Source of the DNA: Macrostomum lignano
Lineage: Eukaryota
Length of the DNA: 64,000 bases
Assembly (NCBI GenBank): GCA_002269645.1
Contig: NIVC01000195.1
Span: forward strand, 124,001 to 188,000
Direction of reading: 5' to 3'
Of the stretch, positions 1,293 to 44,454 are shown piece after piece. Positions within the stretch are counted from its first letter, which is position 1, and each line of letters starts with the position of its first letter. Under the pieces are notes generated by a model that saw only the letters and a list, made by a program, of their open reading frames with translations, searched no databases and had not been told where the DNA came from. The translations under genes were made by a program, and so were the position numbers.

Positions 1293-3668
1293 TCATTTGC
1301 ATATCATCTTGGCGGCCTTTTTCAGTGCTTCTGCAGCCAGCTCGTCTTGAGTCTTCAACTTTCGCTTCAGCAGCTTGGCGTCATCATGTAGAGCTTTGGC
1401 CTCTCGCTCTTCTAAAGTCCTCATTTTTTTCTGATACTCGAGCAGCATAGCCGAAGCAGCTCGCTTCTCAGCTTCAATTATTTCACGCTCTGCAGCCAAC
1501 TTTTTTTCAGCCGCCTCCAATTCCATCTTCTTCTTGTTTACTTCAATCTCAGCAGCAAGCTGCTCTTCCAACTGTTTAGCGGCAATCCGTGCATCTTTCT
1601 TGGCCTTATCAGCATCTCTTTGCTGTTGAAGGAATTCCATGTACACTGAACGAGCCTTCCCAGCAGACTGAACGTAGACGTCTGTCAATGGAAAGTTTTC
1701 GCAGGTTGTAGGCTCCTCACCAACTAGCCCAGATTGGCGGATGTAGTGTCGAACAAAAAGGCAGGCATCAATAGACAATTCACCAAGCTTGTTGCGTTTT
1801 TTCGTTAACAAGTCCGATAACTCGCTAAAGACTCGCTCTACTGCAGCGTTGCCTGGCTGAATGGTCAGAGCACCCAAAGCTAGTCGGGTTAGTGTGCCGT
1901 ACTTTTTTTGACCACCAAGCTCTAGGGCTGACACGCGAAGCCAAAATGTAACCACATCATTGTCCTTAGCCAAAGCCACTACCTGTTGGTCAACGAGGAA
2001 GCATCGCCATTCGGAATCAATTTTTGATACGGAATCAGGTGTATATTCCATTTGTTTGGCTAGGTTACATGCAGCAAGCGATGTAGTAGCTGCTGCGAGA
2101 CCGACTTTCATAGGATATTGCGGATCCAGAAATTGTAGCGAGCGTAAGACAGGATTCGACAGAGGCAAATGTTCTTGCAAGTACAATGCAAGTTCACGAT
2201 AGAAGGTGCGAACACGTAGGAAAAAGAGCTTCTGTTGAGTGTCCGACAAGCCTTTTTTTAATGTCTCTTTAGCTGCTTCGCCGATAAAGATGGCTTCATT
2301 AGAGAGGAAGTATTTGCCTTCCAACGACAAATTTCTCAAATGTCGATTGTTCTCCTGAATGTGCGCTGGATTTAAAAAGAATGACAAAGTCTGCCTAAAC
2401 AAATTGCGGACTTCTCCATGCAAAAGATGGACACACGGCTCCTCTGTCTGAAATGCCTTCTCGAATTGGTCTAGATGCGGCAAGACAGCAGCCAGAAATT
2501 GCAGATTAAGCAGTGTATGCGTCGACTTTAGGTGCTCAGCAATTTCTTTGGTCTTTTTGGTCTTTTGCTCAATCAGAGATGGATTCTTCACAAAGAATTC
2601 TTCCAGAGAATCATATTGCTCAATAAGCCTATTAACAACAGGCAAAAGCTGCACCCATCTTGTTTCAACGCGCCGCAACATGCGATGCTGGGCCACTTGA
2701 AGCAGTGACTGAACTTTGTTATAACGCGTCCACCTTTTCGAGGTCTGAAAGTAGGAGAACACTTCATCAGCGAAGTCCTCTACATTTCCATCAAAGGCTT
2801 CACATGCACGTCGAACCGCATTGGAGACAATATGCAAACTGCATGGTCCAATGGAAACAAGATGAGATGCAAAGTCATGCATTATTTTTTGGAAGCCGTT
2901 AAACTTTCCAACCATAACTGCTGGTCCATCTGTTGATATGCTAACACAGTTCCTAATCGGAATGTTGAATTCATCGAGAATCTTCAAAACTTCCTCTTTC
3001 AGAGCAGCGGCTGAGCAGTCAGAAACTTCAACTGTTTTCAAGGCAGTTGTACACAGCCTTCCCTTCTTCGACGACACAAATGATATTACAACTGCCATGT
3101 GCTTTCGTGCCCCATCAGATGACTCGTCAATAGAAAGGGAAAACAGTCCGCAGCCAGAGTTCAAGTCTTGAATCATCTCATCACGCATCACTGGTGCAAG
3201 AGCGTGATTAACAAGATAGCACAGTTTTGTGCGATGGCACTTCATGTCTTGAGCAATTTTGCTATCATGAAACATAGCTGGGTACACACCCGAGTGGTCG
3301 GCTGTATTGTACGCAATATTGTGCTCAATAAAATGGATTCCAAGTCGCAGCTCTGCCATTAGCACTTCTGCGTCAGCCTTCTTCATGGCAGTGAAAGATG
3401 GCTTGCTGCCTTGAGTAGGAAAAAAGTGTGCTATCCCAGTCTCATTCATGACTGGCAATCGACTCTTGTGCTTCTTGCCTTGGGCGTGGGCTGTAACTGC
3501 GCCGAACCCACTAGTGCCGAGGTGAAATGATTTTTTGCACACGGTGCAGAAGCCAAGCAGTTCGTCACTTCGATCAGGCTGAAGCCACTCGCTAAGGACT
3601 CGTCCATCAATGGATCGCTGTAACCACTCATGTCGAAATGCTGTTGCACGAGGCTTGCTTAGAGACAT
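1293..3668 (-). CDS. hAT transposase, 791 aa, uninterrupted
   Basis: BED-like finger (CTVC...H...H), DDE residues in SIDESSD / STDG / AVERVFS, CxxH (CSLH), TRW motif, hAT dimerisation-like region, K/E-rich C-terminal tail. Confidence 0.93.
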   Translation of the reverse strand: MSLSKPRATAFRHEWLQRSIDGRVLSEWLQPDRSDELLGFCTVCKKSFHLGTSGFGAVTAHAQGKKHKSRLPVMNETGIAHFFPTQGSKPSFTAMKKADAEVLMAELRLGIHFIEHNIAYNTADHSGVYPAMFHDSKIAQDMKCHRTKLCYLVNHALAPVMRDEMIQDLNSGCGLFSLSIDESSDGARKHMAVVISFVSSKKGRLCTTALKTVEVSDCSAAALKEEVLKILDEFNIPIRNCVSISTDGPAVMVGKFNGFQKIMHDFASHLVSIGPCSLHIVSNAVRRACEAFDGNVEDFADEVFSYFQTSKRWTRYNKVQSLLQVAQHRMLRRVETRWVQLLPVVNRLIEQYDSLEEFFVKNPSLIEQKTKKTKEIAEHLKSTHTLLNLQFLAAVLPHLDQFEKAFQTEEPCVHLLHGEVRNLFRQTLSFFLNPAHIQENNRHLRNLSLEGKYFLSNEAIFIGEAAKETLKKGLSDTQQKLFFLRVRTFYRELALYLQEHLPLSNPVLRSLQFLDPQYPMKVGLAAATTSLAACNLAKQMEYTPDSVSKIDSEWRCFLVDQQVVALAKDNDVVTFWLRVSALELGGQKKYGTLTRLALGALTIQPGNAAVERVFSELSDLLTKKRNKLGELSIDACLFVRHYIRQSGLVGEEPTTCENFPLTDVYVQSAGKARSVYMEFLQQQRDADKAKKDARIAAKQLEEQLAAEIEVNKKKMELEAAEKKLAAEREIIEAEKRAASAMLLEYQKKMRTLEEREAKALHDDAKLLKRKLKTQDELAAEALKKAAKMICK

Positions 3669-4291
3669 CTCACTACGAGGGTACGAGCGTATTCTCAGAA
3701 TATTTTTTCAGTTATTGTCTTATTGAGTTAAACGCAAGTCGCAAAGGCAGCAAAGCTGAAAAATAAGTTGAGCTACTTTGTAAAGTCTTTCTAGCCAACC
3801 TGATCTATTTAATTAACTATTGGTATTGACTCATTAAACTCGCTTCCAGACTCATTAGGTTCCAATTTCCATTCTAGCTCTATGCGAAAAACTAAGTTTC
3901 CTAGTAAGAGGGTGGCGGTGGAACATAGACTAAACTAAGAACTACAATCAATAAAGAAATGAACTTTTAAACAGTAGTATAATGTGTACAAATAATTAAG
4001 GAGAATTCCAACAAATAGAAAATACTAGATATTGACAAATATATATATATATAAGATATTTAGTATATAGATTGTATAAAACTAAAGTGTGTCCTCAATT
4101 CCTCATATATTCAAATATCAGAGCAAAATCGGAGCAACCAAATTTCCGCAGATTGCAAAATTCCTCTTGATTTTCCACAGGCGAGCCAGAAATTCCGCAT
4201 TGCGGAATTTCCGCAGGTAGTGGGAACACTGCATGCAAGCCCCAAGCCAGCGATAAGTCCTGATGAAGCAAGGCTTGAGCCCAGCCTCCTC

Positions 4292-4400
4292 TTAGCGAGC
4301 CAGCTTGTGGATTTTGGCCAGCCGTTTGCGCAGTTCGGTTGGAAATTTCTCATAGCACGGCTTGCAGACCGGCTTCAGGTCGTACTCGTAGAACTTCGTC
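4292..4400 (-). CDS. LIMS1: PINCH/LIMS exon 7 (last): [35 protein letters not shown]
   Basis: Matches the PINCH C-terminus (vertebrate [26 protein letters not shown]). CAG acceptor at 4401-4403, TAA at 4292-4294. Confidence 0.93.
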
Positions 4401-4614
4401 CTGCGGCGGCGGGAGGGTGAGTGCAAAACTGTACATGAGTGAGGGATGGCAGCTTCCTGCCGTGCAGCCAGTGTTTTGCATTTCTGGTCTGCTTCTTTTG
4501 CCTGCAGTTTAATTTTCGCCTTGCTGCAGAAATATCAAAATAGCTGCGTGGCAATACAACCATAGCTGCCTGTAGCTGCCCTTACTGAGATTCTTGTCTC
4601 AGTAAGTTTATTAA

Positions 4615-4883
4615 CGGGATAATAATAACGATAATAATAATAACAATACTTAATTGATTACACCTGCCCTAGTGGGCAGATGTGCAACCGACAGCTCATC
4701 TGAAGGCTGCGTACGGCTGTTCAGTCCAAGGACTGGGAAGGGGGGGTTTCAGCACACACACACACACACCCTCAATTACCCCGGTGAACTGAAGCAATGC
4801 CGAGTTAAGTGTCTTGCTCAAGGAATCGAACCCCCGACCTTTAAGTCGTGAGTCCGACGCTCTAACCACTAGGCTACAACCCC
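4615..4883 (-). mobile_element. tRNA-derived CORE-type SINE, internally deleted copy
   Basis: tRNA head with A and B boxes, partial CORE (TTGAGCAAGACACTTAAC), 3' stem-loop and (TTA)n tail. Homologous to 28305-28568. Confidence 0.85.
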
Positions 4884-4953
4884 TAACGGGGTGAGCAGCG
4901 GGTTAGGGGGGGGGGGGGCGCACAAGCAGCATCCACAGACCCAGCACACTCAC

Positions 4954-5105
4954 TTTTGATTCATCTGCCTGTCGCAGACGGAGCACTGGAAGTGGGCGGA
5001 GCACCAGCTCTTGCAGCAGGCCTGGACGCACTCGTCGCTGATGGTGTCGTTGCAGACAAAGCAGGCCTGGCCGAACAGCTGCTGGAAGTGGGTCTCGCAG
5101 TAGGC
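4954..5105 (-). CDS. LIMS1: PINCH/LIMS exon 6 (end of LIM4, LIM5)
   Basis: AYCETHFQQLFGQACFVCNDTISDECVQACCKSWCSAHFQCSVCDRQMNQ. CAG acceptor, GTGAGT donor, phases fit both neighbours. Confidence 0.93.
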
Positions 5106-5227
5106 CTGCAGCGCGGGATTCGGATTGGAGAGCGATTATCGATTAGGTTAAGGGAATTATCACTTGGATTATAAGTCGGATTAGTGGCAATTCTCATTTG
5201 GATTAGAGGAGATTTAGGGAAGAGTCT

Positions 5228-5405
5228 CAATCGGATTAGGAGAGATTTTCAATCGGATTAGGAGAGATTTCAATCGGATTAGGAGAGATTTTCAATCGGA
5301 TTAGGAGAGATTTTCAATCGGATTAGGAGAGATTTTCAATCGGATTAGGGGAGATTTTCAATCGGATTAGGAGAGATTTTCAATCGGATTAGGGGAGATT
5401 CTCAA
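5228..5405. repeat. 21-22-bp minisatellite, ~8 copies, in a PINCH intron
   Basis: Unit (T)TTCAATCGGATTAGGAGAGAT. Confidence 0.9.
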
Positions 5406-5414
5406 TCCTCCTAC

Positions 5415-5902
5415 CTGTCCGCGCCGCTCAAAGAAGCGGGTGCCGTTGAACGGCTTCTCGCAGACGGCGCACACGAAGTGCTCCACGTGCCAGGCCTTGT
5501 TGATGGCGTGCACCACGCGCTCCTCAATCGGCCTGCGGCAGCGGGCGCAGACGGGGACGCCCAGCTTGTCGAAGCAGCGGATGCAGTACAGCTGGTCGTC
5601 CTTCTCGCGGGCCTCGGCGGTGAGCTCGGCGCGGCAGCCGGTGCAGTTGAAGTGGTAGGGGTGGTAGTTGTCGCCCTTGAAGCGGAGCACCTGGTCGGCC
5701 TCGATGATGTCGTGGCAGCGGTTGCAGAGGAAGCGGGCGGCGCCCCGGACCCGCTCCTTGGCGTTGCAGTCCTTGCACAGGGCGCGGCCGAGGTTCTTCA
5801 CGAATGCGTCGGTGAGGGCCAGGCCGCACAGCTGGCAGGTGAAGCAGTCCGGGTGCCATGAGGACTGCATGGCGCGGATCACCCGGCCGACGATGAACTC
5901 GC
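5415..5902 (-). CDS. LIMS1: PINCH/LIMS exon 5 (LIM2-LIM4)
   Basis: GEFIVGRVIRAMQSSWHPDCF...YHPYHFNC...WHVEHFVCAVCEKPF, closely matching PINCH. CAG acceptor, GTAG donor. Confidence 0.95.
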
Positions 5903-5944
5903 CTGATAAGGGAGGCGAAACAGATGGATCCAGATTCCTGATGT

Positions 5945-6170
5945 AAAGATCTAGATGAATGCTGTATAGATCTAGATGAATGCTGTATAGATCTAGATGA
6001 ATGCTGTATAGATCTAGATGACTGATGTATAGATATAGATGCCTGCTGTATGGATATAGATGCCTGCTGTATGGATATAGATGCCTGCTGTATGGATATA
6101 GATGCCTGATGTATAGATCTAGATGTCTGCTGTATACAGTAGATATAGAGGCCTGAGATATAGATATAGA
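5945..6170. repeat. Degenerate 21-bp minisatellite, ~10 copies
   Basis: Unit ATAGATCTAGATGAATGCTGT and variants. Confidence 0.85.
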
Positions 6171-6179
6171 AAATCTAAC

Positions 6180-8702
6180 AAAGCAACTTACACACCCACC
6201 AAAGCAAGCTACACACCCTAGATTGCAACCTAGACACCCGCCAAAGCAAGCTACACACCCTAGGTTGCAACCTAGACACCCGCCAAAGCAACCTACACAC
6301 CCGCCAAAGCAACCTACACACCCGCCAAAGCAAGCTACACACCCGCCAAAGCAACCTACACACCCACCAAAGCAACCTAGACACCCTAGATTGCAACCTA
6401 CACACCCGCCAAAGCAAGCTACACACCCGCCAAAGCAAGCTACACACCCGCCAAAGCAAGCTACACACCCGCCAAAGCAAGCTACACACCCGCCAAAGCA
6501 AGCTACACACCCGCCAAAGCAAGCTACACACCCGCCAAAGCAAGCTACACACCCGCCAAAGCAAGCTACACACCCGCCAAAGCAAGCTACACACCCTAGA
6601 TTGCAACCTACAACCTACACACCCGCCAAAGCAAGCTACACACCCTAGATTGCAACCTACACACCCGCCAAAGCAACCTACACACCCTAGATTGCAACCT
6701 AGACACCCGCCAAAGCAAGCTACACACCCTAGGTTGCAACCTAGACACCCGCCAAAGCAAGCTACACACCCGCCAAAGCAACCTACACACCCGCCAAAGC
6801 AACCTACACACCCGCCAAAGCAAGCTACACACCCGCCAAAGCAAGCTACACACCCGCCAAAGCAAGCTACACACCCGCCAAAGCAAGCTACACACCCGCC
6901 AAAGCAAGCTACACACCCGCCAAAGCAAGCTACACACCCGCCAAAGCAAGCTACACACCCGCCAAAGCAAGCTACACACCCGCCAAAGCAAGCTACACAC
7001 CCGCCAAAGCAAGCTACACACCCGCCAAAGCAAGCTACACACCCTAGATTGCAACCTACACACCCGCCAAAGCAAGCTACACACCCTAGATTGCAACCTA
7101 CACACCTGCCAAAGCAAGCTACACACCCTAGGTTGCAACCTAGACACCCGCCAAAGCAAGCTACACACCCTAGGTTGCAACCTAGACACCCGCCAAAGCA
7201 AGCTACACACCCGCCAAAGCAAGCTACACACCCTAGATTGCAACCTACACACCCGCCAAAGCAAGCTACACACCCGCCAAAGCAAGCTACACACCCTAGA
7301 TTGCAACCTACACACCCGCCAAAGCAAGCTACACACCCGCCAAAGCAAGCTACACACCCTAGATTGCAACCTACACACCCGCCAAAGCAAGCTACACACC
7401 CTAGGTTGCAACCTAGACACCCGCCAAAGCAACCTACACACCTGCCAAAGCAACCTACACACCCGCCAAAGCAAGCTACACACCCGCCAAAGCAACCTAC
7501 ACACCCGCCAAAGCAACCTAGACACCCTAGATTGCAACCTACACACCCGCCAAAGCAAGCTACACACCCGCCAAAGCAAGCTACACACCCGCCAAAGCAA
7601 GCTACACACCCGCCAAAGCAAGCTACACACCCGCCAAAGCAAGCTACACACCCGCCAAAGCAAGCTACACACCCGCCAAAGCAAGCTACACACCCTAGAT
7701 TGCAACCTACACACCCGCCAAAGCAAGCTACACACCCTAGATTGCAACCTACACACCTGCCAAAGCAAGCTACACACCCTAGGTTGCAACCTAGACACCC
7801 GCCAAAGCAAGCTACACACCCTAGGTTGCAACCTAGACACCCGCCAAAGCAAGCTACACACCCGCCAAAGCAAGCTACACACCCTAGGTTGCAACCTAGA
7901 CACCCGCCAAAGCAAGCTACACACCCGCCAAAGCAAGCTACACACCCGCCAAAGCAAGCTACACACCCTAGATTGCAACCTACACACCCGCCAAAGCAAG
8001 CTACACACCCGCCAAAGCAAGCTACACACCCTAGATTGCAACCTACACACCCGCCAAAGCAAGCTACACACCCGCCAAAGCAAGCTACACACCCTAGATT
8101 GCAACCTACACACCCGCCAAAGCAAGCTACACACCCGCCAAAGCAAGCTACACACCCTAGATTGCAACCTACACACCCGCCAAAGCAAGCTACACACCCT
8201 AGATTGCAACCTACACACCTGCCAAAGCAAGCTACACACCCTAGGTTGCAACCTAGACACTCGCCAAAGCAAGCTACACACCCTAGGTTGCAACCTAGAC
8301 ACCCGCCAAAGCAAGCTACACACCCTAGGTTGCAACCTAGACACCCGCCAAAGCAAGCTACACACCCTAGGTTGCAACCTACACACCCGCCAAAGCAAGC
8401 TACACACCCGCCAAAGCAAGCTACACACCCTAGGTTGCAACCTACACACCTGCCAAAGCAAGCTACACACCCTAGGTTGCAACCTAGACACCCGCCAAAG
8501 CAAGCTACACACCCTAGGTTGCAACCTACACACCTGCCAAAGCAAGCTACACACCCTAGGTTGCAACCTAGACACCCGCCAAAGCAAGCTACACACCCTA
8601 GGTTGCAACCTACACACCTGCCAAAGCAAGCTACACACCCTAGGTTGCAACCTACACACCTGCCAAAGCAAGCTACACACCCTAGGTTGCAACCTAGACA
8701 CC
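6180..8702. repeat. 21-bp two-variant minisatellite, ~120 copies, intronic
   Basis: Units CCCGCCAAAGCAAGCTACACA and CCCTAGATTGCAACCTACACA interspersed. Confidence 0.97.
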
Positions 8703-8722
8703 AACTCGCAGCGCAGACTCAC

Positions 8723-8789
8723 CGCACTTGGCGCAGCAGGGCTTGAACAGCACACTGAAGTCGTGCTCGCAGTACTTCCTGCCGTCGAA
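8723..8789 (-). CDS. LIMS1: PINCH/LIMS exon 4: [22 protein letters not shown]
   Basis: Matches vertebrate [25 protein letters not shown] acceptor, GTGAGT donor, phase 1. Confidence 0.93.
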
Positions 8790-8874
8790 CTAAAAGCAGC
8801 AAAATGCAAGCAGGCTGCACGCAGAACTTCGGAGAGCACAACATCACAGCAGCAACAGCAGCAACAGCTCTTAC

Positions 8875-8920
8875 CTCGTAGAATCGGCCGCCCTCAAACG
8901 GCCGGAAACACTGGGCGCAC
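8875..8920 (-). CDS. LIMS1: PINCH/LIMS exon 3: (V)CAQCFRPFEGGRFYE
   Basis: Matches CAQCFQQFPEGLFYE. TTTCCAG acceptor, GTAAGA donor. Confidence 0.9.
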
Positions 8921-9359
8921 CTGGAAATGCGGCATGCCGATTAAGCATTGATAGTTAAATGATGACCGCATGCCAGAGCCAGTGTGATAAATAGATAGAA
9001 CAATATAAACAAAAATAAAAAGATGGGACAACACAGAGGCTGAGCATTCAGTCGCTGGTACATTTTATTATGCCATTTAAATAACCAATCAAGTGTGCTG
9101 GCTGACAGAACTGGACAAGGTAAGCAGTCAGCAAACAACAAATAAGCAATATAAATTTAAATAAAGTATACAGGCCGCTCCAGTGGATTGGCAGTGCAGA
9201 CAGACGGACTCTGCATGACAGCAGCGCCAAGCCATACTGTGTGCCATGGCGAGTGTGCATGGGGCGATGGGGCTCACCGGCCTGGATGTCACTTTGTTAC
9301 TCATTAGTACTCTTGCTAATCACCTCAATCCATCTATCGATTTCTATAAGATATTTAAA

Positions 9360-9995
9360 ATCAGTCCCGTTGAGATCCCTAGAATGAATCCCATTAAGAT
9401 CCCTAGAATGAGTCCCATTAAGATCCCTAGAATGAGTCCCATTAAGATCCCTAGAAAGAGTCCCATTGAGGTCCCTAGAATGAATCCCATTAAGATCCCG
9501 AGAATGAGTCCCATTAAGATCCCTAGAAAGAGTCCCATTGAGGTCCCTAGAATGAGTCCCATTAAGATCCCGAGAATGAATCCCATTAAGATCCCTAGAA
9601 TGAGTCCCATTAAGATCCCTAGAATGAATCCCATTAAGATCCCGACAATGAGTCCCATTAAGATCCCTAGAAAGAGTCCCATTGAGGTCCCTAGAATGAA
9701 TCCCATTAAGATCCCGAGAATGAATCCCATTAAAATCCCTAGAATGAGTCCCATTAAGATCCCGAGAATGAATCCCATTAAGATCCCTAGAATGATTCCC
9801 ATTAAGATCCCTAGAATGATTCCCATTAAGATCCCTAGAATGAATCCCATTAAGGTCCCTAGAATGATTCCCATTAAGGTCCCTAGAATGAATCCCATTA
9901 AGGTCCCTAGAATGAATCCCAATAAGATCCCTAGAATGAATCCCAATAAGGTCCCTAGCTAGAATGAATCCCATTAAGATCCCTAGAATGCCTTA
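9360..9995. repeat. 24-bp minisatellite, ~26 copies
   Basis: Unit AAGATCCCTAGAATGARTCCCATT. Confidence 0.95.
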
Positions 9996-10299
9996 AAATG
10001 CCTCAAGTAATCGCAATCCCGAGAGAAGCAGTGAGATCAGTTACAGCACTAGATAATTTGCTTCAGCCCCACAAATAAGTTAAAGTGCAGCTTCCTCAAC
10101 CAGCGCAATCATTATTGAATACACTAAAAGTGCAAATCCTAATAAACCAAATCAGTGGAATGTACTTTTACAATAAAATATTCGGAAAGTACACGACAAC
10201 ATATCAAGACCACTCGCTAGGCTGTATAATCGCGGTTGACAACATGAGAAGTCGAGTAAAGCTGAGAAGCGCCCCCTGTTCGACAGGAGGAGGACTTAC

Positions 10300-10404
10300 A
10301 CAAAGCAGTGCTGGTGCCAGAAGCGGCCCTCATAGGCCAGCACCCCGCTAACCAGGCTGCCCTCGCAGTGGGCGCAGCTGCGAGCGCGGGCAGCGCCGTC
10401 GCCG
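10300..10404 (-). CDS. LIMS1: PINCH/LIMS alternative exon 2b (first Zn finger of LIM1)
   Basis: 105 nt, phase 2-2, encodes GDGAARARSCAHCEGSLVSGVLAYEGRFWHQHCF(V). CTTTAG acceptor, GTAAGT donor. Confidence 0.78.
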
Positions 10405-10637
10405 CTAAAGGCGGGCGTTATCGAGCAGTTTGGTTTTGTTTAAAACAATTGCATTTTTAGTTGCTATGGCATAACTCGAGCGGATAATTACTAGACAGAA
10501 GTGAATTAAAGTGGTCAACAAATAAGTTAACAATATGCAAATAAGCTGCTTGTGCACAGCTGCACACCCCAGTAGTTCATAGCCTTAGGTTTTTATGACC
10601 AAAAATTAATTTTTTTATTAGTCAGAAAAACTGGATC

Positions 10638-11442
10638 AAAACTGAGCACCTGGGAGGGCGGCGACTGCAAACTGAGGATCTGGGAGGGCGGCGACTGCAA
10701 ACTGAGGATCTGGGAGGGCGGCGACTGCAAACTGAGGATCTGGGAGGGCGGCGGCGACTTACAAACTGAGGATCTGGGAGGGCGGCGACTGCAAACTGAG
10801 GATCTGGGAGGGCGGCGACTGCAAACTGAGGATCTGGGAGGGCGGCGACTTACAAACTGAGGATCTGGGAGGGCGGCGACTGCAAACTGAGGATCTGAGA
10901 GGGCGGCGGCGACTTACAAACTGAGGATCTGGGAGGGCGGCGACTGCAAACTGAGGATCTGGGAGGGCGGCGGCGACTTACAAACTGAGGATCTGGGAGG
11001 GCGGCGACTGCAAACTGAGGATCTGGGAGGGCGGCGGCGACTTACAAACTGAGGATCTGGGAGGGCGGCGACTGCAAACTGAGGATCTGGGAGGGCGGCG
11101 ACTGCAAACTGAGGATCTGGGAGGGCGGCGACTTACAAACTGAGGATCTGGGAGGGCGGCGACTGCAAACTGAGGATCTGGGAGGGCGGCGACTGCAAAC
11201 TGAGGATCTGGGAGGGCGGCGACTGCAAACTGAGGATCTGGGAGGGCGGCGACTGCAAACTGAGGATCTGGGAGGGCGGCGACTTACAAACTGAGGATCT
11301 GGGAGGGCGGCGACTTACAAACTGAGGATCTGGGAGGGCGGCGACTTACAAACTGAGGATCTGGGAGGGCGGCGACTGCAAACTGAGGATCTGGGAGGGC
11401 GGCGACTGCAAACTGAGGATCTGGGAGGGCGGCGACTGCATT
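10638..11442. repeat. 30-bp minisatellite (33-34-bp variants), ~26 copies
   Basis: Unit AAACTGAGGATCTGGGAGGGCGGCGACTGC, lying between exons 2a and 2b. Confidence 0.95.
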
Positions 11443-11520
11443 AAACTGAGACATGAATTCCCCAGATCTGATGACAGAACAAAATCGTTCAAGCGCAAGC
11501 AGGCAGCCGTGAGGACTCAC

Positions 11521-11664
11521 ACAAAGCAGTGCTCATGCCAGGCCTCGCCGCCGGCCCGGAACACCCGATCGGCGCGGCCGAACGTCTCGCCGCAGCGCTG
11601 GCAGGCCGAGGACTCGCCGACACCGACGTTGGCCGCGCCGGCCGGGCCGCTCAGCTGCATGCGG
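11521..11664 (-). CDS. LIMS1: PINCH/LIMS alternative exon 2a (first Zn finger of LIM1)
   Basis: 144 nt, phase 2-2, encodes RMQLSGPAGAANVGVGESSACQRCGETFGRADRVFRAGGEAWHEHCF(V). TTTGACAG acceptor, GTGAGT donor. Confidence 0.88.
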
Positions 11665-11761
11665 CTGTCAAAGGAGAAAAAAGAGAGTGCAAATTTCTGC
11701 TTCTAAAAGATAAGAAACACAATTCGAGCCAGGAGTCACAGCAGTTGATTCCCAAGCTCAC

Positions 11762-11892
11762 TCGAATCCGCCCTGCACCATGTCCAGCTCAGTCTGGTAG
11801 TGGTCAAGGCTGTTATTGCTGCCGTCCAGGTGCCTCCCAGCGGCGCCATCAAAATTGACAGGCAGGTGTCCGGAATTGTAAGTGGCAGCCAT
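11762..11892 (-). CDS. LIMS1: PINCH/LIMS first coding exon (MAATYNSGHLP...DMVQGGF)
   Basis: ATG 3 nt after a TTCTGTTGCAG acceptor. Open frame to a phase-2 GTGAGC donor compatible with both 2a and 2b. Full protein 378 aa (2a) or 365 aa (2b). No homology support for this exon itself. Confidence 0.7.
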
Positions 11893-12527
11893 TGCCTGCA
11901 ACAGAACAGCATTTCAAATCTATTAACATTCAAAATATACTTTATAATCTGTAATCCTATTAGAAAAATTACAAGCTTAGAGAATTAGCAATAATTATGT
12001 AATATACTATTTTTTCCACTAGGAATTTAGGACAAATAAAATAAACAATGCTATAGTCATGATTTAATACCATACCACTAACCTGGCACCTTAAGGTGGC
12101 ATAGCCTGCTTGTGTCTAAGCCATGAGGTGCGCCCTGTGATATTGCTGTTATGTTTGCAAATAAGGCCTTATTTTACATTGTGCACTGCAATAAATATTT
12201 AATGCACTTGGGATTGCTGCATAAGACAGACATTTAACAATCCTAAAAATTTATAATATATCATAATATTTATATGCCTATATTTATCAATAAAACTATC
12301 TTATTAAGGGATTCTTATTGAAAATGTTTGCAGCACTACAGCAAAGCATTGCAGACAAACAAATTTCAAAAACATGGGTAAGTTTTGCTATGCACCTTTT
12401 CAAACAAAACTCAAGTTGCCAGCCTTCTAGAATGTCAATATATTAATTAGTTCTGTCAGGACATTTGATTTTCCCAACCTATTAATGGAGACAATAATGT
12501 CTAGATGATGACCAAATACTTTAGAGA

Positions 12528-13141: not shown

Positions 13142-16100
13142 TCTTCGAAGCTAGGGTTTCTTCTGTGTGGTCCATTGGCTGCCGCCGAGTCAGTGAAAGA
13201 TCAACAGACCGTTTCCGCCGATCAAGTTGAATGTAGCGCTGCCCAGACCTTGTGCTGTAGTGCTCCCGTAGACGATCTCTCCTCTTTTTGGCGGCTTGAA
13301 GCATTGGGAATCTGTGAACGTCAGGAAGACGCTGCAGAAAGTTCCTTTAACTGTCACCCGGAGCTAGAGAACGGTAGATATACCGTAAAATTGCCGTGGA
13401 AATATCCAGAAGGCTCCGTGCCGTTGAGAGACCACTTTGATATGGCGTATAAGAGACTGAGTACCACACTCCGTGCACTGCGAAAGGAACCTGAGACTCT
13501 AATGAAGTACAGTGAAATCATCTCAGAACAGGAAGCATCTGGCATAATTGAAAAAGTGCCTGAGGAGGATTTAGGCAATAAGAACTGCCACTATCTACCC
13601 CATCACCATGTCACCAAGGCCGACAGTGAGTTCACACGGTTACGCATTGTCTTTGATGGATCGGCCAAAAGTCGGGGTGGAGACGTCTCTATTAATAATC
13701 TACTTCACGTCGGTCCAACTGATGTTCCGCTGATACCAGAAATTCTGATGCGGTTCCGTATCAATCCTATTGCTGTCACAGGTGACATCGAGAAGGCCTT
13801 TCTGCAGATAGCCATTGAAACTCAGGACAGAGATTACTTACGATTTTTGTGGACTCTCCCGAGCGAGCCAAACAACGTTTTTCACTACCGATTCTGTCGG
13901 TTACCGTTCGGTCTCACGTGCTCTCCTGGTATCTTGCGAGCTACGGTAGTTCAACACCTTGATTTTCACCAGCAGACCTTTCCAACGACCGTCAATGTCA
14001 TTCGCCGAGACCTATACGTCGACAATTTAGTTACTAGCTGTAAATCTCTAACGGAAGCCCTCCAGCTGTATCAGGATACTAAAGTGATATTCAAGTCCGC
14101 AGGCATGAATATGCGACAGTGGAAGTCCAATTTGGATTCGTTTAATAGGTCGGTGCCCGGTCAGGATGTCGGTCACGCTGAGAGAGTTCTAGGGCTCCGC
14201 TGGGACTCTATTCAGGATGTCTTCCTCATTCACTTCCAGGATCTGGTTGACAAGGCTATTGCCTCGCCTTCCTCTAAGCGGTTGATGTTAGGAGTGCTTG
14301 CCTCGGTGTACGATCCATTGGGCGTTCTATCGCCTGCTTTGACCGTTGTCAAGGTGCTGTTGCAAAAGCTGTGCGTTCGAAAGTATGGTTGGGACGACGA
14401 ACTACCACCAGACATCGCCGAGATTTGGAACCAGTGGTTGCAGTCATTGATGCACTCGCAGTTTGTAATTCCTCGTTATTTATTCGCCACTCTCGAGTCA
14501 GTGCCGACAAAATTGGAGCTGCATGGATTCTGTGACGCCAGTTCATCAGCGTATGCCGCCTGTGTGTATATCAAGGCTTATTCGGACACAGGCAAGATTA
14601 CGACGCAGCTAATTCAGGCAAAAACGCGCGTAGCACCGCTTTCGAATCTTAGTATCGCCCGACTGGAATTGTTGGGAGCTCTCATTTTGGCGCGTCTGAT
14701 GCGAATGGTTTCGTCTCAGTTTCCGAAGGTTCCTCGTTATCTCTGGACAGATAGCAGGACGACTCTCTTGTGGATTACGAACACAGAAAAACTTCGACCG
14801 GTTTTCGTCCAGAATCGCATCAAAGAGATTCGACTTCTAACTTCGACATCTGAATGGCGACATGTTCCGGGGGAGTTGAATCCTGCCGACCTGCCGTCTC
14901 GCGGCTGTCTGCCGGAACAGCTGCAGAATAATGCTGTGTGGTTAAGCGGTCCCAACTTCCTTCACACTTCCTTCTACCAGCCTTCGCCTGACGATCTGCA
15001 GTTAAGCGTTGCTGCTGAGGACTTCATTACAGGAGTAGTGTCACAAAGTGATGACCAGAGCGAAGGAGCACATAGTACACTGCACGTCTCTTCCGTCGTT
15101 GACATAAGTAGATTTTCACGTTATTCCCGTTTAGTACGCGTCCTAGCTTGGATAAGGAGATTTGTCAGCAACCTTAAAAGTAGTCTAGTCGGTCAGACGA
15201 CTAACAGAGCAGTAGCACTGACAGCACACGAGCTCAATACTGCAGAAGAGCTTTTGTTGATGTCAGTTCAACGACAAGAACTTTCAAAAGAAATTTGTCA
15301 CATTCAGAATGGTTCGGCGGCCACACCACTAAATAGAGATTTGAATCTTTGGCTGGACGAAGTTGGTCTGTTGCGTTCGCGCGGTCGGATTTCGGTGATG
15401 TCCTTCGATGTAAACAATCCGATCTTAGTACCTCGACACAGTCCGTTAGAGCAGCTCATAATTCGAAACGCTCATCAGGCAGTTGCTCACGAGGGAGTCG
15501 CGTCGACGCTATGTAAGGTCCGTGAAAAGTACTGGATCGTGAAAGGCCGTCAGCGAACAAAGCAGGAATTGTCGAAGTGCGTAGTGTGTAAAAAGATTCA
15601 AGGACGCTCCTACACAGTACCTCAGATTTCTCAGTTACCGGACTTTCGTCTTGCCGATATTCGACCTTTTCAATCCGTCGGCATTGATTATTGTGGTCCG
15701 ATGTTCTATCGGACGGGGGAGGATGGTAGTGAAACGGGAAAAGCGTATGTACTACTGTTCACGTGCTCCTCCACTCGCGCAATTCATCTAGAACTACTTT
15801 CTGATATGACTACAGCTCAGTTCTTGAACGGCTTACGACGATTTGTCAGTCGGAGAGGAATACCTTCCATTATCAGTGATAACGCAAAGACCGCTGCACC
15901 AGTAACGAGCTGGAAAGTACTGGATCGTGAAAGGCCGTCAGCGAACAAAGCAGGAATTGTCGAAGTGCGTAGTGTGTAAAAAGATTCAAGGACGCTCCTA
16001 CACAGTACCTCAGATTTCTCAGTTACCGGACTTTCGTCTTGCCGATATTCGACCTTTTCAATCCGTCGGCATTGATTATTGTGGTCCGATGTTCTATCGG

Positions 16101-17615: not shown

Positions 17616-19080
17616 AGAGACTAGTAGCAGGTGCAGTTGAGGCCTGCAAACTATCAAGGCTTGATTAGACATTATGAGCTATTACATTATGAGCTAGAAA
17701 AAAACACTCAAACTAATACTAGAATAGTTTTTAATGTCAAGATATCTAGGCTAACTAGCTAAGCTAAAACCAGATACACTGAAAACCAAGATGCTCTGAC
17801 TCAAGTCCCTAATTCCCTATGTACTACATATAGCTCTATTCTACTGAATTTTATCCCAATTTATATCAACTATCAGATAATTTAATTTGCTATAGTTTTG
17901 GTAAGTTGGCATTAATCTCAGAAGAACAGGGGATTAGAGATCAAAATCTAGGATCAAGTTAGGATACTATAGCATTTGTATACTATAAAAACTTAAGTTT
18001 AGGCTAATGTCTGATATGATAAAAAGTTATATCATAAATCTGACCTTTACAAAAATTTTTGCATAAAATTTTGGTACATAAAGGCTATTACTAGACTTTG
18101 AAATATATACCCTACTGTCCTATAATAGATACTTTATTTATTAAGCTATATCCTAAATTGTATTTTATAAAATTTTTAATTGTAAATGAATACAGATTTT
18201 GGAACTATTTAACAATTAGCTTTAATCACCTAAACAAACATTAGGGGTCAAACAAGATCTTAACTTTGCAATGTATATAAGATTTTGACTTTTTATTTAA
18301 TCAAATCTTAACTTTAATTTTCAACAATGCCAAAAACATTTTAGATTGAGTATTAGTATACACTAGGTCTAGTAAGGGAAAAATATAGGACCTTCTTTGT
18401 ACACTAGAATAAAAAAATGTTTTCACTATATATATACCAAAGGTTGTACACTTTTAAGGTACATCTTTTTTGTTTTGCTCTGTTTGAAATGAATTCATTA
18501 ATCATTATTCATTATTCATGCAAAGTAATAAACTTTTAGGGCACAAAGGTTAAAATTGTTTTTAATTATTTTTGTTCTATGTTAACAATGTTAAATATAG
18601 TAGCATATTATATATAAAGTCATACTAATTTTTTGTAGATCCTAATAATAGATATATGCCAAAATTTTCCAATGCTATATACACTAGAAAATCCCAATAT
18701 ATATGTTGCCTTCCAAACTATGATGCCAAGGTAGGAGCTAGTTTTTTGTCAAAATCATTATGCCATTTTCAATTTTGACATGCCATTGGCATAAAGGATA
18801 GTAGATAAACATAATGGAAATGCAAGATAGAATTTGCCAATTACAATTACAAAAGCAAAATTTCTATCAATGCATGATGAAATGCTATTTGCCATTGATC
18901 ATAAAGTGCAAGTTGAAAGTCATGTAACTATCACTATAAACAAGATAATATTTGAACAAACTTAAAAGTAAAACTGAAATTTGGAATTGGAGATTCAGCA
19001 TTGGCAATTGGGCAAGGCAATGCTTATCCCATAGTACTATAAGACTCATACATGCCCCAAAAAATACCCAAGTAGTAGTA

Positions 19081-41700: not shown

Positions 41701-41839
41701 CTGTCCACCATTCGCTATTCATCCTTCCCCGAATACGTGTGCTTCCTCATTCCACATCTCTTCTGGAATTAAGAAGCTCTTACCCTTCTACCTGTCTTTA
41801 AAGCATCTCTAATTTCCCTTCCCCGACATCGCTCCCCAC

Positions 41840-42385
41840 CTGGTGACTGTCGTCCAGCAGACGGAAGTGCCTGGCCGCCTGGATGCAGATGGCGGCGGCG
41901 GCGCCGGCCAGGCTGGAGTAGCGGTCCAGCGACCAGCGGAAGCGCCACTCCCGGGACCGGTCCTCCGAGGCGACAAACAGCGACCTGGCCGGGCCACTGA
42001 GGAACAGCTTGCTGAAGGCGTACTCGGAGGCGTACAGCAGCGACACCAACAGGACCACCACGCCGAGCTTGGCCGCCGCGGCTGCCAGAGTGAAGCCCGG
42101 CCGGCGGTCAAGAGTGGCCTGGCAGACCCGGGGCCAGGCGACCGCCATGAAGAAGGTGACCAGGAACCAGTGAGACACCAGCGGCACAAAGTAGTAGAAC
42201 TGGTAGGGCCGGTTCATGACCAGGCAGAGGCACACCACCAGCACGTTCATGCGGAACAGCACGCGCAGGCCGCGCACCAGGCAGCCCTTGAAGCCGCGAG
42301 ACCAGAAATAGGTCATGTGACCGAAGCCGGATAGGAACAGGTAGCTGGACACGCACACCCGGATGTGCATGTACACCGGGAGCAC
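41840..42385 (-). CDS. CASD1: CASD1 exon 3
   Basis: VLPVYMHIRVCVSSYLFLSGFGH, MNRPYQFYYFVPLVSHWF, EWRFRWSLDRY. Confidence 0.95.
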
Positions 42386-42489
42386 CTGGGAACGGGGGCG
42401 AAGTGAATTAGCGGTGCAAGTTTGACTAATTTTGGGATTGCTGTTTATCTTGAGTGATTTGGGGATTCGGAGGATACGGACACAGAGGC

Positions 42490-43405
42490 TTGGGATTCGG
42501 GGATAGGGACACGGAGCCTTGGGATTTGGGGGACACGAAGCCTTGGGATTTGGGGATAGGGACACGGGGTCTTGGGATTTGGCGATAGGGACACGGAGCC
42601 TTGGGATTTGGGGGACACGAAGCCTTGGGATTTGGGGATAGGGACACGGAGCCTTGGGATTTGGGGATAGGGACACGGAGCCTTGAGATTTGGGGATAGG
42701 GACAGGGAGCCTTGGGATTTGGGGGACACGAAGCCTTGGGATTTGGGGATAGGGACACGGAGCCTTGGGATTTGGGGATAGGGACACGGAGCCTTGGGAT
42801 TTGGGGATAGGGACACGGAGCCTTGAGATTTGGGGATAGGGACAGGGAGCCTTGGGATTTGGGGGACACGAAGCCTTGGGGTTTGGGGATAGGGACACGG
42901 AGCCTTGGGATTTGGGGGACACGAAGCCTTGGGATTTGGGGATAGGGACACGGAGCCTTGGGATTTGGGGATAGGGACACGGAGCCTTGGGATTTGGGGA
43001 TAGGGACACGGGGTCTTGGGATTTGGCGATAGGGACACGGAGCCTTGGGATTTGGGGGACACGAAGCCTTGGGATTTGGGGATAGGGACACGGAGCCTTG
43101 GGATTTGGGGATAGGGACACGGAGCCTTGAGATTTGGGGATAGGGACAGGGAGCCTTGGGATTTGGGGGACACGAAGCCTTGGGATTTGGGGATAGGGAC
43201 ACGGAGCCTTGGGATTTGGGGATAGGGACACGGAGCCTTGGGATTTGGGGATAGGGACACGGAGCCTTGAGATTTGGGGATAGGGACAGGGAGCCTTGGG
43301 ATTTGGGGGACACGAAGCCTTGGGATTTGGGGATAGGGACACGGAGCCTTGGGATTTGGGGATAGGGACATGGGGCCTTGTGATTTGGGGATAGGGACAC
43401 GGGGT
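42490..43405. repeat. 24/29-bp G-rich minisatellite, CASD1 intron 2
   Basis: Unit GGAGCCTTGGGATTTGGGGATAGGGACAC. Confidence 0.95.
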
Positions 43406-43438
43406 CCAACAAACAGGGCCCAGACACCCAGACCCTAC

Positions 43439-43957
43439 CTGCGAGGCGGAGGTCATGTGGTACACCAGGATGATGAGCTGGGCCACTCCCTTCCACTCGT
43501 CCGTGACATCCCGGTGCAGCAGCTGGGTGTACTGCGAGTTGTCGGTGAAGAACAGCCCCAGGACCAGCACGTACAGCAGCGGGATGACAAAGTTGAGCGC
43601 GGTGAAGGTTTTGTTCTCCTTCATGAAGAAGGAGGTCCGGTCGCAGACGAAAAAGTAGCCGAGCACGAGGCCCAGCTTGGCCAGAGCGCAGGCGAGCTCG
43701 TGCAGCGAGTCGATGACGGAGAAGGGGCTGGCGTCCGAGCCGGTGCGCTGGTGCGTCATGGCGTAGGTCGGCTTGAGGCGGCGGCCGCCGTCCTTGCGAA
43801 CGAATGCGTTGAACAGGCAGAGCAGGCCGGCCACCACAGCCCAGCAGGCGAAGAAGGCGAAGGTGAGCAGCTGGCTGATGGTCACGGGCTCCGGCACCGA
43901 GCAGCAGGTGCCGTCCGAGTACTTCATGTGGTTGTTGCAGTAGAAGTTGGCCAACAC
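43439..43957 (-). CDS. CASD1: CASD1 exon 2
   Basis: NFYCN...DGTCC, YFFVCDRT, LHRDVTDEWKG. Confidence 0.95.
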
Positions 43958-44039
43958 CTGGTTGGGAAGATGGAATTGTTCCGAAATGGAATGAGGAACA
44001 TGGGATAAGGCGTATGGCTGGAGAAATGGGAAATACCGA

Positions 44040-44415
44040 ATGGGAGCATGGGGAATACGGGATGGGGTATGGGGGATACAGGGTGGGATATGGGAAATAC
44101 CAGATGGGATATGGGGAATAGCGGATGGGATATGGGGAATAGCGGATGGGATATGGGGAATATACCATAGGATATGGGGAATAGCGGATGGGATATGGGG
44201 AATATAGGATAGGATACAGGGAATAGCGGATGGGATATGGGGAATATGGGATAGGATATGGGGAATAGCGGATGGGATATGGGGAATACCGGATAGGATA
44301 TGGGGAATAGCGGATGGGATATGGGGAATATGGGATAGGATATGGGGAATAGCGGGTGGGATATGGGGAATACCGGATAGGATATGGGGAATAGCGAATG
44401 CGATATGGGAATACC
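44040..44415. repeat. ~21-bp minisatellite, CASD1 intron 1
   Basis: Unit GGGATATGGGGAATAGCGGAT. Confidence 0.9.
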
Positions 44416-44454
44416 AGATTGCCAAAAGTGCTTTAAAGGGAGAAAATTCCCGAC

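Follow-up and report, generated by a model that had tools for sequence, protein, structure and literature searches.

A second first-finger exon in a PINCH gene of Macrostomum lignano that is probably maintained as an alternative exon

The minus strand of the window analysed here, a 64,000-nucleotide (nt) stretch of Macrostomum lignano DNA, carries a seven-exon gene for PINCH, a protein with five LIM domains. Two adjacent exons of this gene, hereafter 2a and 2b, each encode a first zinc finger for the first LIM domain (LIM1), and only exon 2a is annotated. The locus therefore raises the question of whether exon 2b is a working part of the gene and, if so, whether it is used in place of exon 2a or together with it. 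An earlier note on this DNA had regarded the pair as probably mutually exclusive. The explanation that we consider fairly probable is that exon 2b is a genuine, maintained alternative exon, likely to be the flatworm counterpart of a lophotrochozoan second first-finger exon and probably included together with exon 2a.

Positions 4000-12200 of the window are identical to part of contig NIVC01000195.1 of assembly GCA_002269645.1 (locus label L004), and all internal boundaries of the seven exons are AG/GT (Table 1). Joining exons 1, 2a, and 3-7 yields a protein of 378 amino acids, which contains five Pfam LIM stretches and little else and shares 55-66% identity over >80% of its length with its best matches, LIMS1/unc-97/PINCH proteins of many phyla. 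This product equals the annotated Mlig029859g1 (P0182), apart from 11 missing N-terminal residues. By sequence comparison, the gene is the PINCH/LIMS (unc-97, steamer duck) orthologue, and the two exons are homologous, phase-matched copies of the LIM1 first-finger exon, as the earlier note had proposed on both points. The assembly holds two more near-identical copies of the gene, Mlig024389g1 and g2 (loci L001 and L003), which is consistent with the hidden polyploidy reported for M. lignano (PMC10468722). The annotated M. lignano proteins of all three copies use exon 2a.

The first base of either exon completes a GA- codon left by exon 1, and both exons stop two bases into a Val codon that is finished by exon 3, i.e. 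both are phase 2-2. Exon 2a has the acceptor ...cctttgacag/C and the donor TGCTTTGT/gtgagt, and exon 2b has the acceptor ...cgcctttag/C and the donor TGCTTTGT/gtaagt. The 39-nt in-frame gap between the two (144 versus 105 nt) falls mainly in the linker before the finger, and the finger patterns are CQRC-x18-HEHC in 2a and CAHC-x16-HQHC in 2b. The sizes, the phase, the initial C, the shared TGC TTT GT end, and the finger patterns given in the earlier note were all reproduced on reading and translating the minus strand. So was its claim that either exon links exon 1 to exon 3 in a five-LIM PINCH: exons 1, 2b, and 3-7 encode a protein of 365 amino acids, in which Pfam finds five LIM stretches, as in the 378-residue product. 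Translation further indicates that the frame is kept when both exons are included and when neither is.

With exon 2b, LIM1 reads CAHC-x16-HQHC-FV-CAQC-x17-CEHD and fits the LIM-domain (PF00412) consensus, which was tested as C-x2-C-x16-23-H-x2-C-x2-C-x2-C-x16-21-C-x2-(C/H/D) plus a full-length profile match. The Pfam LIM score of this version is 53.5 bits, covering profile positions 1-55 of 58 (cut-off 22.9), compared with 62.7 bits for LIM1 with 2a. Without a first finger, LIM1 scores 31.4 bits and matches the second half of the profile only; judged by this difference from the whole-profile match, the 2b finger is not a chance resemblance. The best solved-structure matches of both LIM1 versions are PINCH LIM1 chains (E 3e-25 for 2a and ~2e-20 for 2b). 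The final 31 nt of 2a and 2b, including 10 nt of intron, contain three mismatches only, which supports an origin by tandem duplication. Derivation of 2b from another LIM domain, at which a gap-free HMMER alignment to paxillin fingers and the LIM2-like x16 finger hint, was rejected as the primary explanation because 2b agrees with 2a in position, in phase, and in its last 31 nt, which take in the donor flank. Dating of the 2a/2b duplication by synonymous-site similarity was uninformative, with a GC (guanine plus cytosine) content at third codon positions (GC3) of ~0.9.

Four features suggest that exon 2b is probably alive and maintained rather than decayed: its splice sites, its GC content by codon position, its identity among gene copies, and the presence of an equivalent exon in a paralogue, which is the strongest line. 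Its acceptor (13 pyrimidines in 20 positions) is within the range of the constitutive exons 3 and 6; that of 2a, with 18/20, is the strongest of the gene. GC contents at the three codon positions are 0.71/0.57/0.86 in 2b and 0.73/0.60/0.92 in 2a, and GC3 of the remaining coding sequence is 0.9, whereas the unique intron flanking 2b has a GC content of 0.35-0.42. Exon 2b shows 0/105 differences among copies L001, L003, and L004. Elsewhere these copies diverge by 2.9-3.8% in unique intron and by 0.3-0.6% in constitutive exons, and exon 2a has acquired one or two nonsynonymous substitutions. The probability of finding no differences in 105 nt at the intron rate is ~0.02, which is suggestive only. 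The differences in exon 2a (window 11521-11664, L001 4923-5066, L003 10232-10375) lie in the linker before the finger, which reads GAANVGVG, GSANVCVG, or GSANVGVG in the three copies. Exon 2a also contains an in-frame ATG as its second full codon (11657-11659, minus strand; RMQLSG...), so that a transcript starting at exon 2a could still encode a full five-LIM protein without exon 1.

The paralogue, Mlig018043g1 (locus L002), is separated from the window gene by a synonymous divergence (dS) of 1.46 and a nonsynonymous divergence (dN) of 0.155 over exons 3-7. It has the same exon order, with 2a' at 10935-11120, 2b' ending at 12377, and exon 3' at 18648; the donor phase of 2b' is that of 2b, and its finger is intact, with x20 spacing. 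Candidate acceptors of 2b' are located at 12053, 12095, 12125, 12173, and 12230. Synonymous sites are saturated at this distance, and in a neutrally evolving relic the open frame, the four ligands, and the donor would not have survived in the paralogue. An older gene model of this locus (UniProt A0A1I8IS40; P0083) joins 2b' to exon 3', giving a 2b-only protein, and the AlphaFold prediction of its LIM1 has a predicted local distance difference test (pLDDT) score of 83-91. The paralogue (L002 10001-25416) differs from the window gene in intron positions, with an extra intron within the counterpart of exon 5 and none between exons 5 and 6, and its 2a' finger ends in CLK rather than CFV.

An odd first finger next to CAQCF in several mollusc and Lingula RefSeq LIMS1 isoforms led us to look more closely at these proteins. 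Two consecutive first fingers are present in 25 of the ~260 PINCH proteins fetched, the sources being molluscs of twelve species, the brachiopod Lingula (two genes), and the bryozoan Watersipora; an example from Haliotis reads ...CRRCGDGFSATEQIVNSNGEVWHTQCFV-NGSSEPRGAM-CSKCGEDIEAQEQMVNYHGQVWHPSCFV-CAQCF.... Other isoforms of these genes are without an insert of 37-42 residues, i.e. the alternatives are 2a alone and 2a plus 2b. Genomic DNA of Crassostrea gigas (L007) and Lingula (L008) has an exon of its own for the insert, situated between the first-finger and CAQCF exons and 1.6-2 kb downstream of the former, with the same phase as in the flatworm and GT/gtaagt donors. Two 1.4-kb Logan contigs without introns, each from a different sequencing run (SRR6151001 and ERR10659098), encode the C. 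gigas 2a+2b protein exactly, which confirms that the oyster 2a+2b mRNA is real.

The annotated 2b isoforms of the molluscs, the brachiopod, and the bryozoan also contain 2a, the sole exception seen being isoform X3 of Ostrea edulis (P0246, XP_056005636.1). Together with the M. lignano paralogue model, this is one of the two 2b-only proteins seen. It begins with MLSLLRR directly upstream of 2b, in a 5'-extended exon 2b, and is thus an alternative first exon rather than a splice from exon 1 to 2b. In C. gigas (L007 13400-13610), the ATG corresponding to the X3 start is out of frame. Tandem-finger LIMS1/PINCH isoforms already occur among the proteins that RefSeq annotates automatically in other phyla (Crassostrea, Haliotis, Patella, Pecten, and others; Lingula; Watersipora), whereas the exon is unannotated in M. 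lignano. Literature searches on the M. lignano gene identifiers and on PINCH LIM1 alternative exons returned nothing relevant, and no paper on tandem-finger PINCH isoforms was found.

The flatworm and lophotrochozoan 2b exons share their place between the first-finger and CAQCF exons, phase 2-2, and a composition of a linker followed by a CCHC finger that ends in CF[VS]. The linker has 9 residues in the flatworm and ~4-14 in the other phyla. Both also have an aliphatic residue in place of a conserved Phe and a Tyr before xGxxWH. Two profiles were built, one from lophotrochozoan 2a-type fingers and one from 2b-type fingers. The 2b-type profile is favoured by M. lignano 2b (by 11.0 bits) and by 2b' (by 8.6 bits), whereas M. 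lignano 2a and 2a' and the Schistosoma, Echinococcus, human, and fly fingers favour the 2a-type profile by 12-23 bits. Every single-copy first finger tested prefers the 2a type, and M. lignano 2a does so by 15.7 bits. The top pairwise partner of flatworm 2b is the bryozoan 2b, with 13 identities (CCHCEASI...YNGQIWH versus CAHCEGSL...YEGRFWH). Flatworm 2b is a probable rather than a proven orthologue of lophotrochozoan 2b.

If exon 2b is such a maintained alternative exon, the default mRNA would be 1-2a-3, because the acceptor of exon 2a is much the strongest and the sole annotated form uses this exon. Inclusion of 2b would place its CCHC finger immediately ahead of the shared second finger, and LIM1 would then have a new N-terminal half. 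To judge from the other phyla, 2b would probably be joined by 2a, and the product would be a 'five-and-a-half-LIM' PINCH with the 2a finger attached as a loose half-LIM. For the 2a+2b isoform of the abalone Haliotis, an AlphaFold model has pLDDT values of 72-82 for 2b and the second finger, <50 for the linker, and 56-67 for the 2a finger. The model thus suggests that 2b pairs with the second finger as a LIM domain and that 2a forms a lower-confidence module on a disordered linker. Since 2b adjoins the shared finger, its inclusion would exchange the N-terminal half of LIM1 with or without 2a. The isoform switch of LIM1 proposed in the earlier note accordingly survives in part, as an exchange of first fingers, with which the AlphaFold model agrees, but not as an exclusive swap. 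Similarly, the note was right that inclusion of both exons keeps the frame, but the resulting half-LIM product, which it treated as the odd one out, is the documented form elsewhere.

Several observations weigh against this explanation. No M. lignano transcript or protein with 2b was found, and the annotated copies all use 2a. Exact look-ups of the 2b-only, 2a+2b, and exon-skipping products were empty, and the window's own 2a product is also absent from the collection; M. lignano RNA assemblies are seemingly missing from it, so that the absence of 2b products is weak evidence. An exhaustive HMMER search with the 46-residue translation of the 2b frame (10300-10439) gave weak multi-LIM or repetitive matches and no close relative. 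A protein search with a short N-terminal query is uninformative about 2b: it missed the identical M. lignano proteins and matched only sequences of up to 234 amino acids, which suggests a length effect in the selection of candidates. We infer that 2b is used in M. lignano mRNA, and the mode of its inclusion is suggested purely by analogy. The three-copy conservation test of 2b is just marginal (p ~0.02). As for the relationship with the other phyla, the sequence argument for orthology is modest: the finger spacing is x16 in flatworm 2b and x20 in 2b' of the paralogue versus x18 in lophotrochozoan 2b, the flatworm exon is without CxKC and the EQMVN[YFC]NG part of EQMVN[YFC]NGQVWH, and generic first fingers of LIM2-5 likewise lean to the 2b-type profile, by 5-9 bits. 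The second first-finger exon is absent from Schistosoma (L005), Echinococcus (L006), and the nemertean Lineus longissimus (L011), in which a single first-finger exon occupies the same intron position (in Lineus, L011 17064-17420, the intron is ~230 nt). The distribution of exon 2b among spiralians is thus patchy, a single ancient origin needs several losses, and it is possible that flatworm and lophotrochozoan 2b arose by independent duplications.

Among the other explanations, strict mutual exclusion, in which each mRNA contains exactly one of the two exons and two five-LIM isoforms differ in the first finger of LIM1, is the one proposed by the earlier note. Tandem-duplicated alternative exons are a well-known class (PMC7797038, PMC12772994, PMC9741552, and PMC9013439). 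Like ATE1 7a/7b and SCN-alpha 5a/5b, exons 2a and 2b are adjacent and phase-compatible and exchange a homologous segment, and such pairs are old and conserved. Homology, adjacency, and equal phase are the properties by which mutually exclusive exons are predicted (PMC5740500 and PMC9013439). Moreover, either exon alone gives an intact five-LIM protein, and 2b-only models exist in O. edulis and in the M. lignano paralogue. However, the PINCH pair differs from mutually exclusive tandem exons in that no enforcing mechanism was found among those examined, namely frameshift or nonsense-mediated decay, a too-short intron, U2/U12 incompatibility, and competing RNA structures. Because inclusion or omission of both exons keeps the frame, nonsense-mediated decay cannot filter either product; the 1,116-nt intron between 2a and 2b poses no steric block; all splice sites of the gene are GT-AG; and an inverted-repeat search and duplex folding of the unique intron segments gave nothing beyond shuffles (absolute z < 1). 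Furthermore, all 2b isoforms seen in the three other phyla, except Ostrea X3, also carry 2a, as in the confirmed oyster mRNA, and the 2b-only Ostrea form starts within its own extended exon. The lack of an enforcing feature, together with the documented co-inclusion in oyster, makes strict either/or splicing in M. lignano less likely, and we regard it as an improbable mode for this gene.

The intron between the two exons has some further features of its own. Each 30-nt repeat unit (10679-11435) carries GUCGCCGCC, which is complementary to GGCGGCGA within exon 2a (11545-11560), and the 26 copies could in principle mask exon 2a. This GC-rich 8-mer is the only recurrent inverted match, and its complementarity was judged to be due to chance when considered as a competing structure. 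The repeat units also hold the splice-site-like motifs ttgcag and gtaagt.

We give slightly less credence still to the idea that M. lignano no longer splices exon 2b, which would then be a duplicated, silent relic that has not yet decayed. It would account for the annotated M. lignano proteins without 2b and for the loss from 2b of most near-invariant residues of the PINCH first finger (the GF motif and EKIVNSNG); the identity among the three very recent gene copies is barely significant, and other flatworms are without the exon. Against it, the open frame of 2b, its four ligands, the in-frame 39-nt length difference, both splice sites, and the codon-position GC are all intact. The paralogue, in spite of a dS of 1.46, keeps an intact equivalent, and neutral survival would be conceivable only if the exons in both genes arose independently and recently. 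Use of 2b as an alternative first coding exon, via an intronic promoter or trans-splicing as in the Ostrea X3 model with its MLSLLRR start, is hardly credible for the window gene, in spite of the paralogue's open frame: the window frame runs into a stop (10442-10440) 12 codons upstream of 2b and no in-frame ATG precedes or lies within 2b, so that a transcript starting there could not translate the finger. The 2b' frame of the paralogue runs open through 121 codons and includes an upstream in-frame ATG close to L002:12033, so that 2b' might be an alternative first exon there.

Most introns of the PINCH gene are filled by minisatellites of up to 2.5 kb. Their length and sequence differ strongly from one gene copy to another (divergence of 11-13% among the three), and the repeat between 2a and 2b also varies in copy number. 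Exons 4 and 5 are separated by ~19 kb in L003 versus 2.8 kb in the window. A stretch in intron 6 (4800-4880, minus strand) resembles a tRNA by eye, with an A-box and a B-box (TAGCCTAGTGG ... GGTTCGATTCC), and is perhaps a fragment of a short interspersed element; ARAGORN tRNA and Rfam scans of the PINCH gene, this stretch included, gave no matches. Of the long open reading frames (ORFs) around the gene, the one of 791 codons probably encodes a hAT transposase, that of 934 codons looks like part of a BEL/Pao long terminal repeat retrotransposon, and the one with a Cas1p-type domain is probably an exon of a CASD1-like gene.

Table 1. Exons of the PINCH gene and other features of the window.
Feature	Position	Strand	Description
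PINCH exon 1	11762..11892	-	131 nt; ATG at 11892; donor GA/gtgagc; ends in phase 2; identical in the three gene copies
Exon 2a	11521..11664	-	144 nt; linker and canonical-type first zinc finger of LIM1 (CQRCGETFGRADRVFRAGGEAWHEHCFV)
Minisatellite, 30-nt unit	10639..11440	-	~26 copies; occupies most of the 1,116-nt intron 2a-2b
Exon 2b (unannotated alternative exon)	10300..10404	-	105 nt; 9-residue linker and divergent first zinc finger (CAHCEGSLVSGVLAYEGRFWHQHCFV)
Minisatellite, 24-nt unit	9365-9990		Intronic
Exon 3	8875..8920	-	Start of the common second zinc finger of LIM1 (CAQCFRPFEGGRFYE), with conserved CAQC
Exon 4	8723..8789	-	Remainder of LIM1 and beginning of LIM2
Minisatellite, 42/21-nt unit	6179-8682		Intronic
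Minisatellite, 21-nt unit	5927-6170		Intronic
Exon 5	5415..5902	-	LIM2 to LIM4
Minisatellite, 22-nt unit	5227-5407		Intronic
Exon 6	4954..5105	-	End of LIM4 and first part of LIM5
Exon 7	4292..4400	-	End of LIM5, C-terminal tail, stop codon
791-amino acid ORF	1293-3668	-	hAT dimerisation domain and DUF4371; immediately downstream of the PINCH gene; also a gene model of the assembly
934-amino acid ORF	13175-15979	+	Pao retrotransposon peptidase, reverse transcriptase, and integrase zinc-binding domains; upstream of the PINCH gene
Long ORF	41798-44425	-	Strong match to Cas1p-type 10-transmembrane acyltransferase domain (E 2e-111)

LIM1 of PINCH is the ILK-binding domain (PMC3561323). Its canonical first finger is near-invariant across animals (CxRCxxGFxxxEKIVNSNGExWH), and 2b-type fingers differ at these very positions; an effect of the 2b version on ILK binding is thus plausible. 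The closest structures are the complexes of human PINCH1/PINCH2 LIM1 with the ILK ankyrin domain (3F6Q, 2KBX, 3IXE, and 4HI8), with which both M. lignano versions share the CAQC second finger. The 2b version needs a two-residue gap when aligned with human PINCH LIM1, whereas it aligns without gaps with paxillin-type LIM fingers. The putative 2a+2b PINCH would also resemble the four-and-a-half-LIM (FHL) proteins in having an N-terminal single-finger half-LIM before complete LIM domains; the AlphaFold model from Haliotis has a detached finger of this kind. In FHL proteins, which are unrelated to PINCH in origin, the half-LIM is constitutive, whereas in PINCH it would arise by alternative splicing.

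A broader suggestion, which we make only tentatively, is that several lophotrochozoan phyla, including the flatworm, share a very old alternative exon that swaps the first finger of LIM1 and so provides a splice-controlled switch for assembling ILK-PINCH-parvin complexes, which vertebrates, insects, and nematodes lack. If this is true, these animals would have a pool of PINCH with altered or lost ILK binding, in which the canonical finger is left as a detached half-LIM. For M. lignano, a transgenic regeneration model, the analysis adds an unannotated coding exon in two paralogous genes. For annotation in general, it indicates that a duplicated pair of exons of the same phase should not be presumed mutually exclusive, as other phyla include both members of the homologous pair. 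It is through PINCH LIM1 that ILK and PINCH assemble the integrin adhesion complex, and a conserved, separately encoded alternative to its first finger would be a natural experiment on what portion of LIM1 is required for ILK binding, as well as a possible route to an ILK-independent PINCH.

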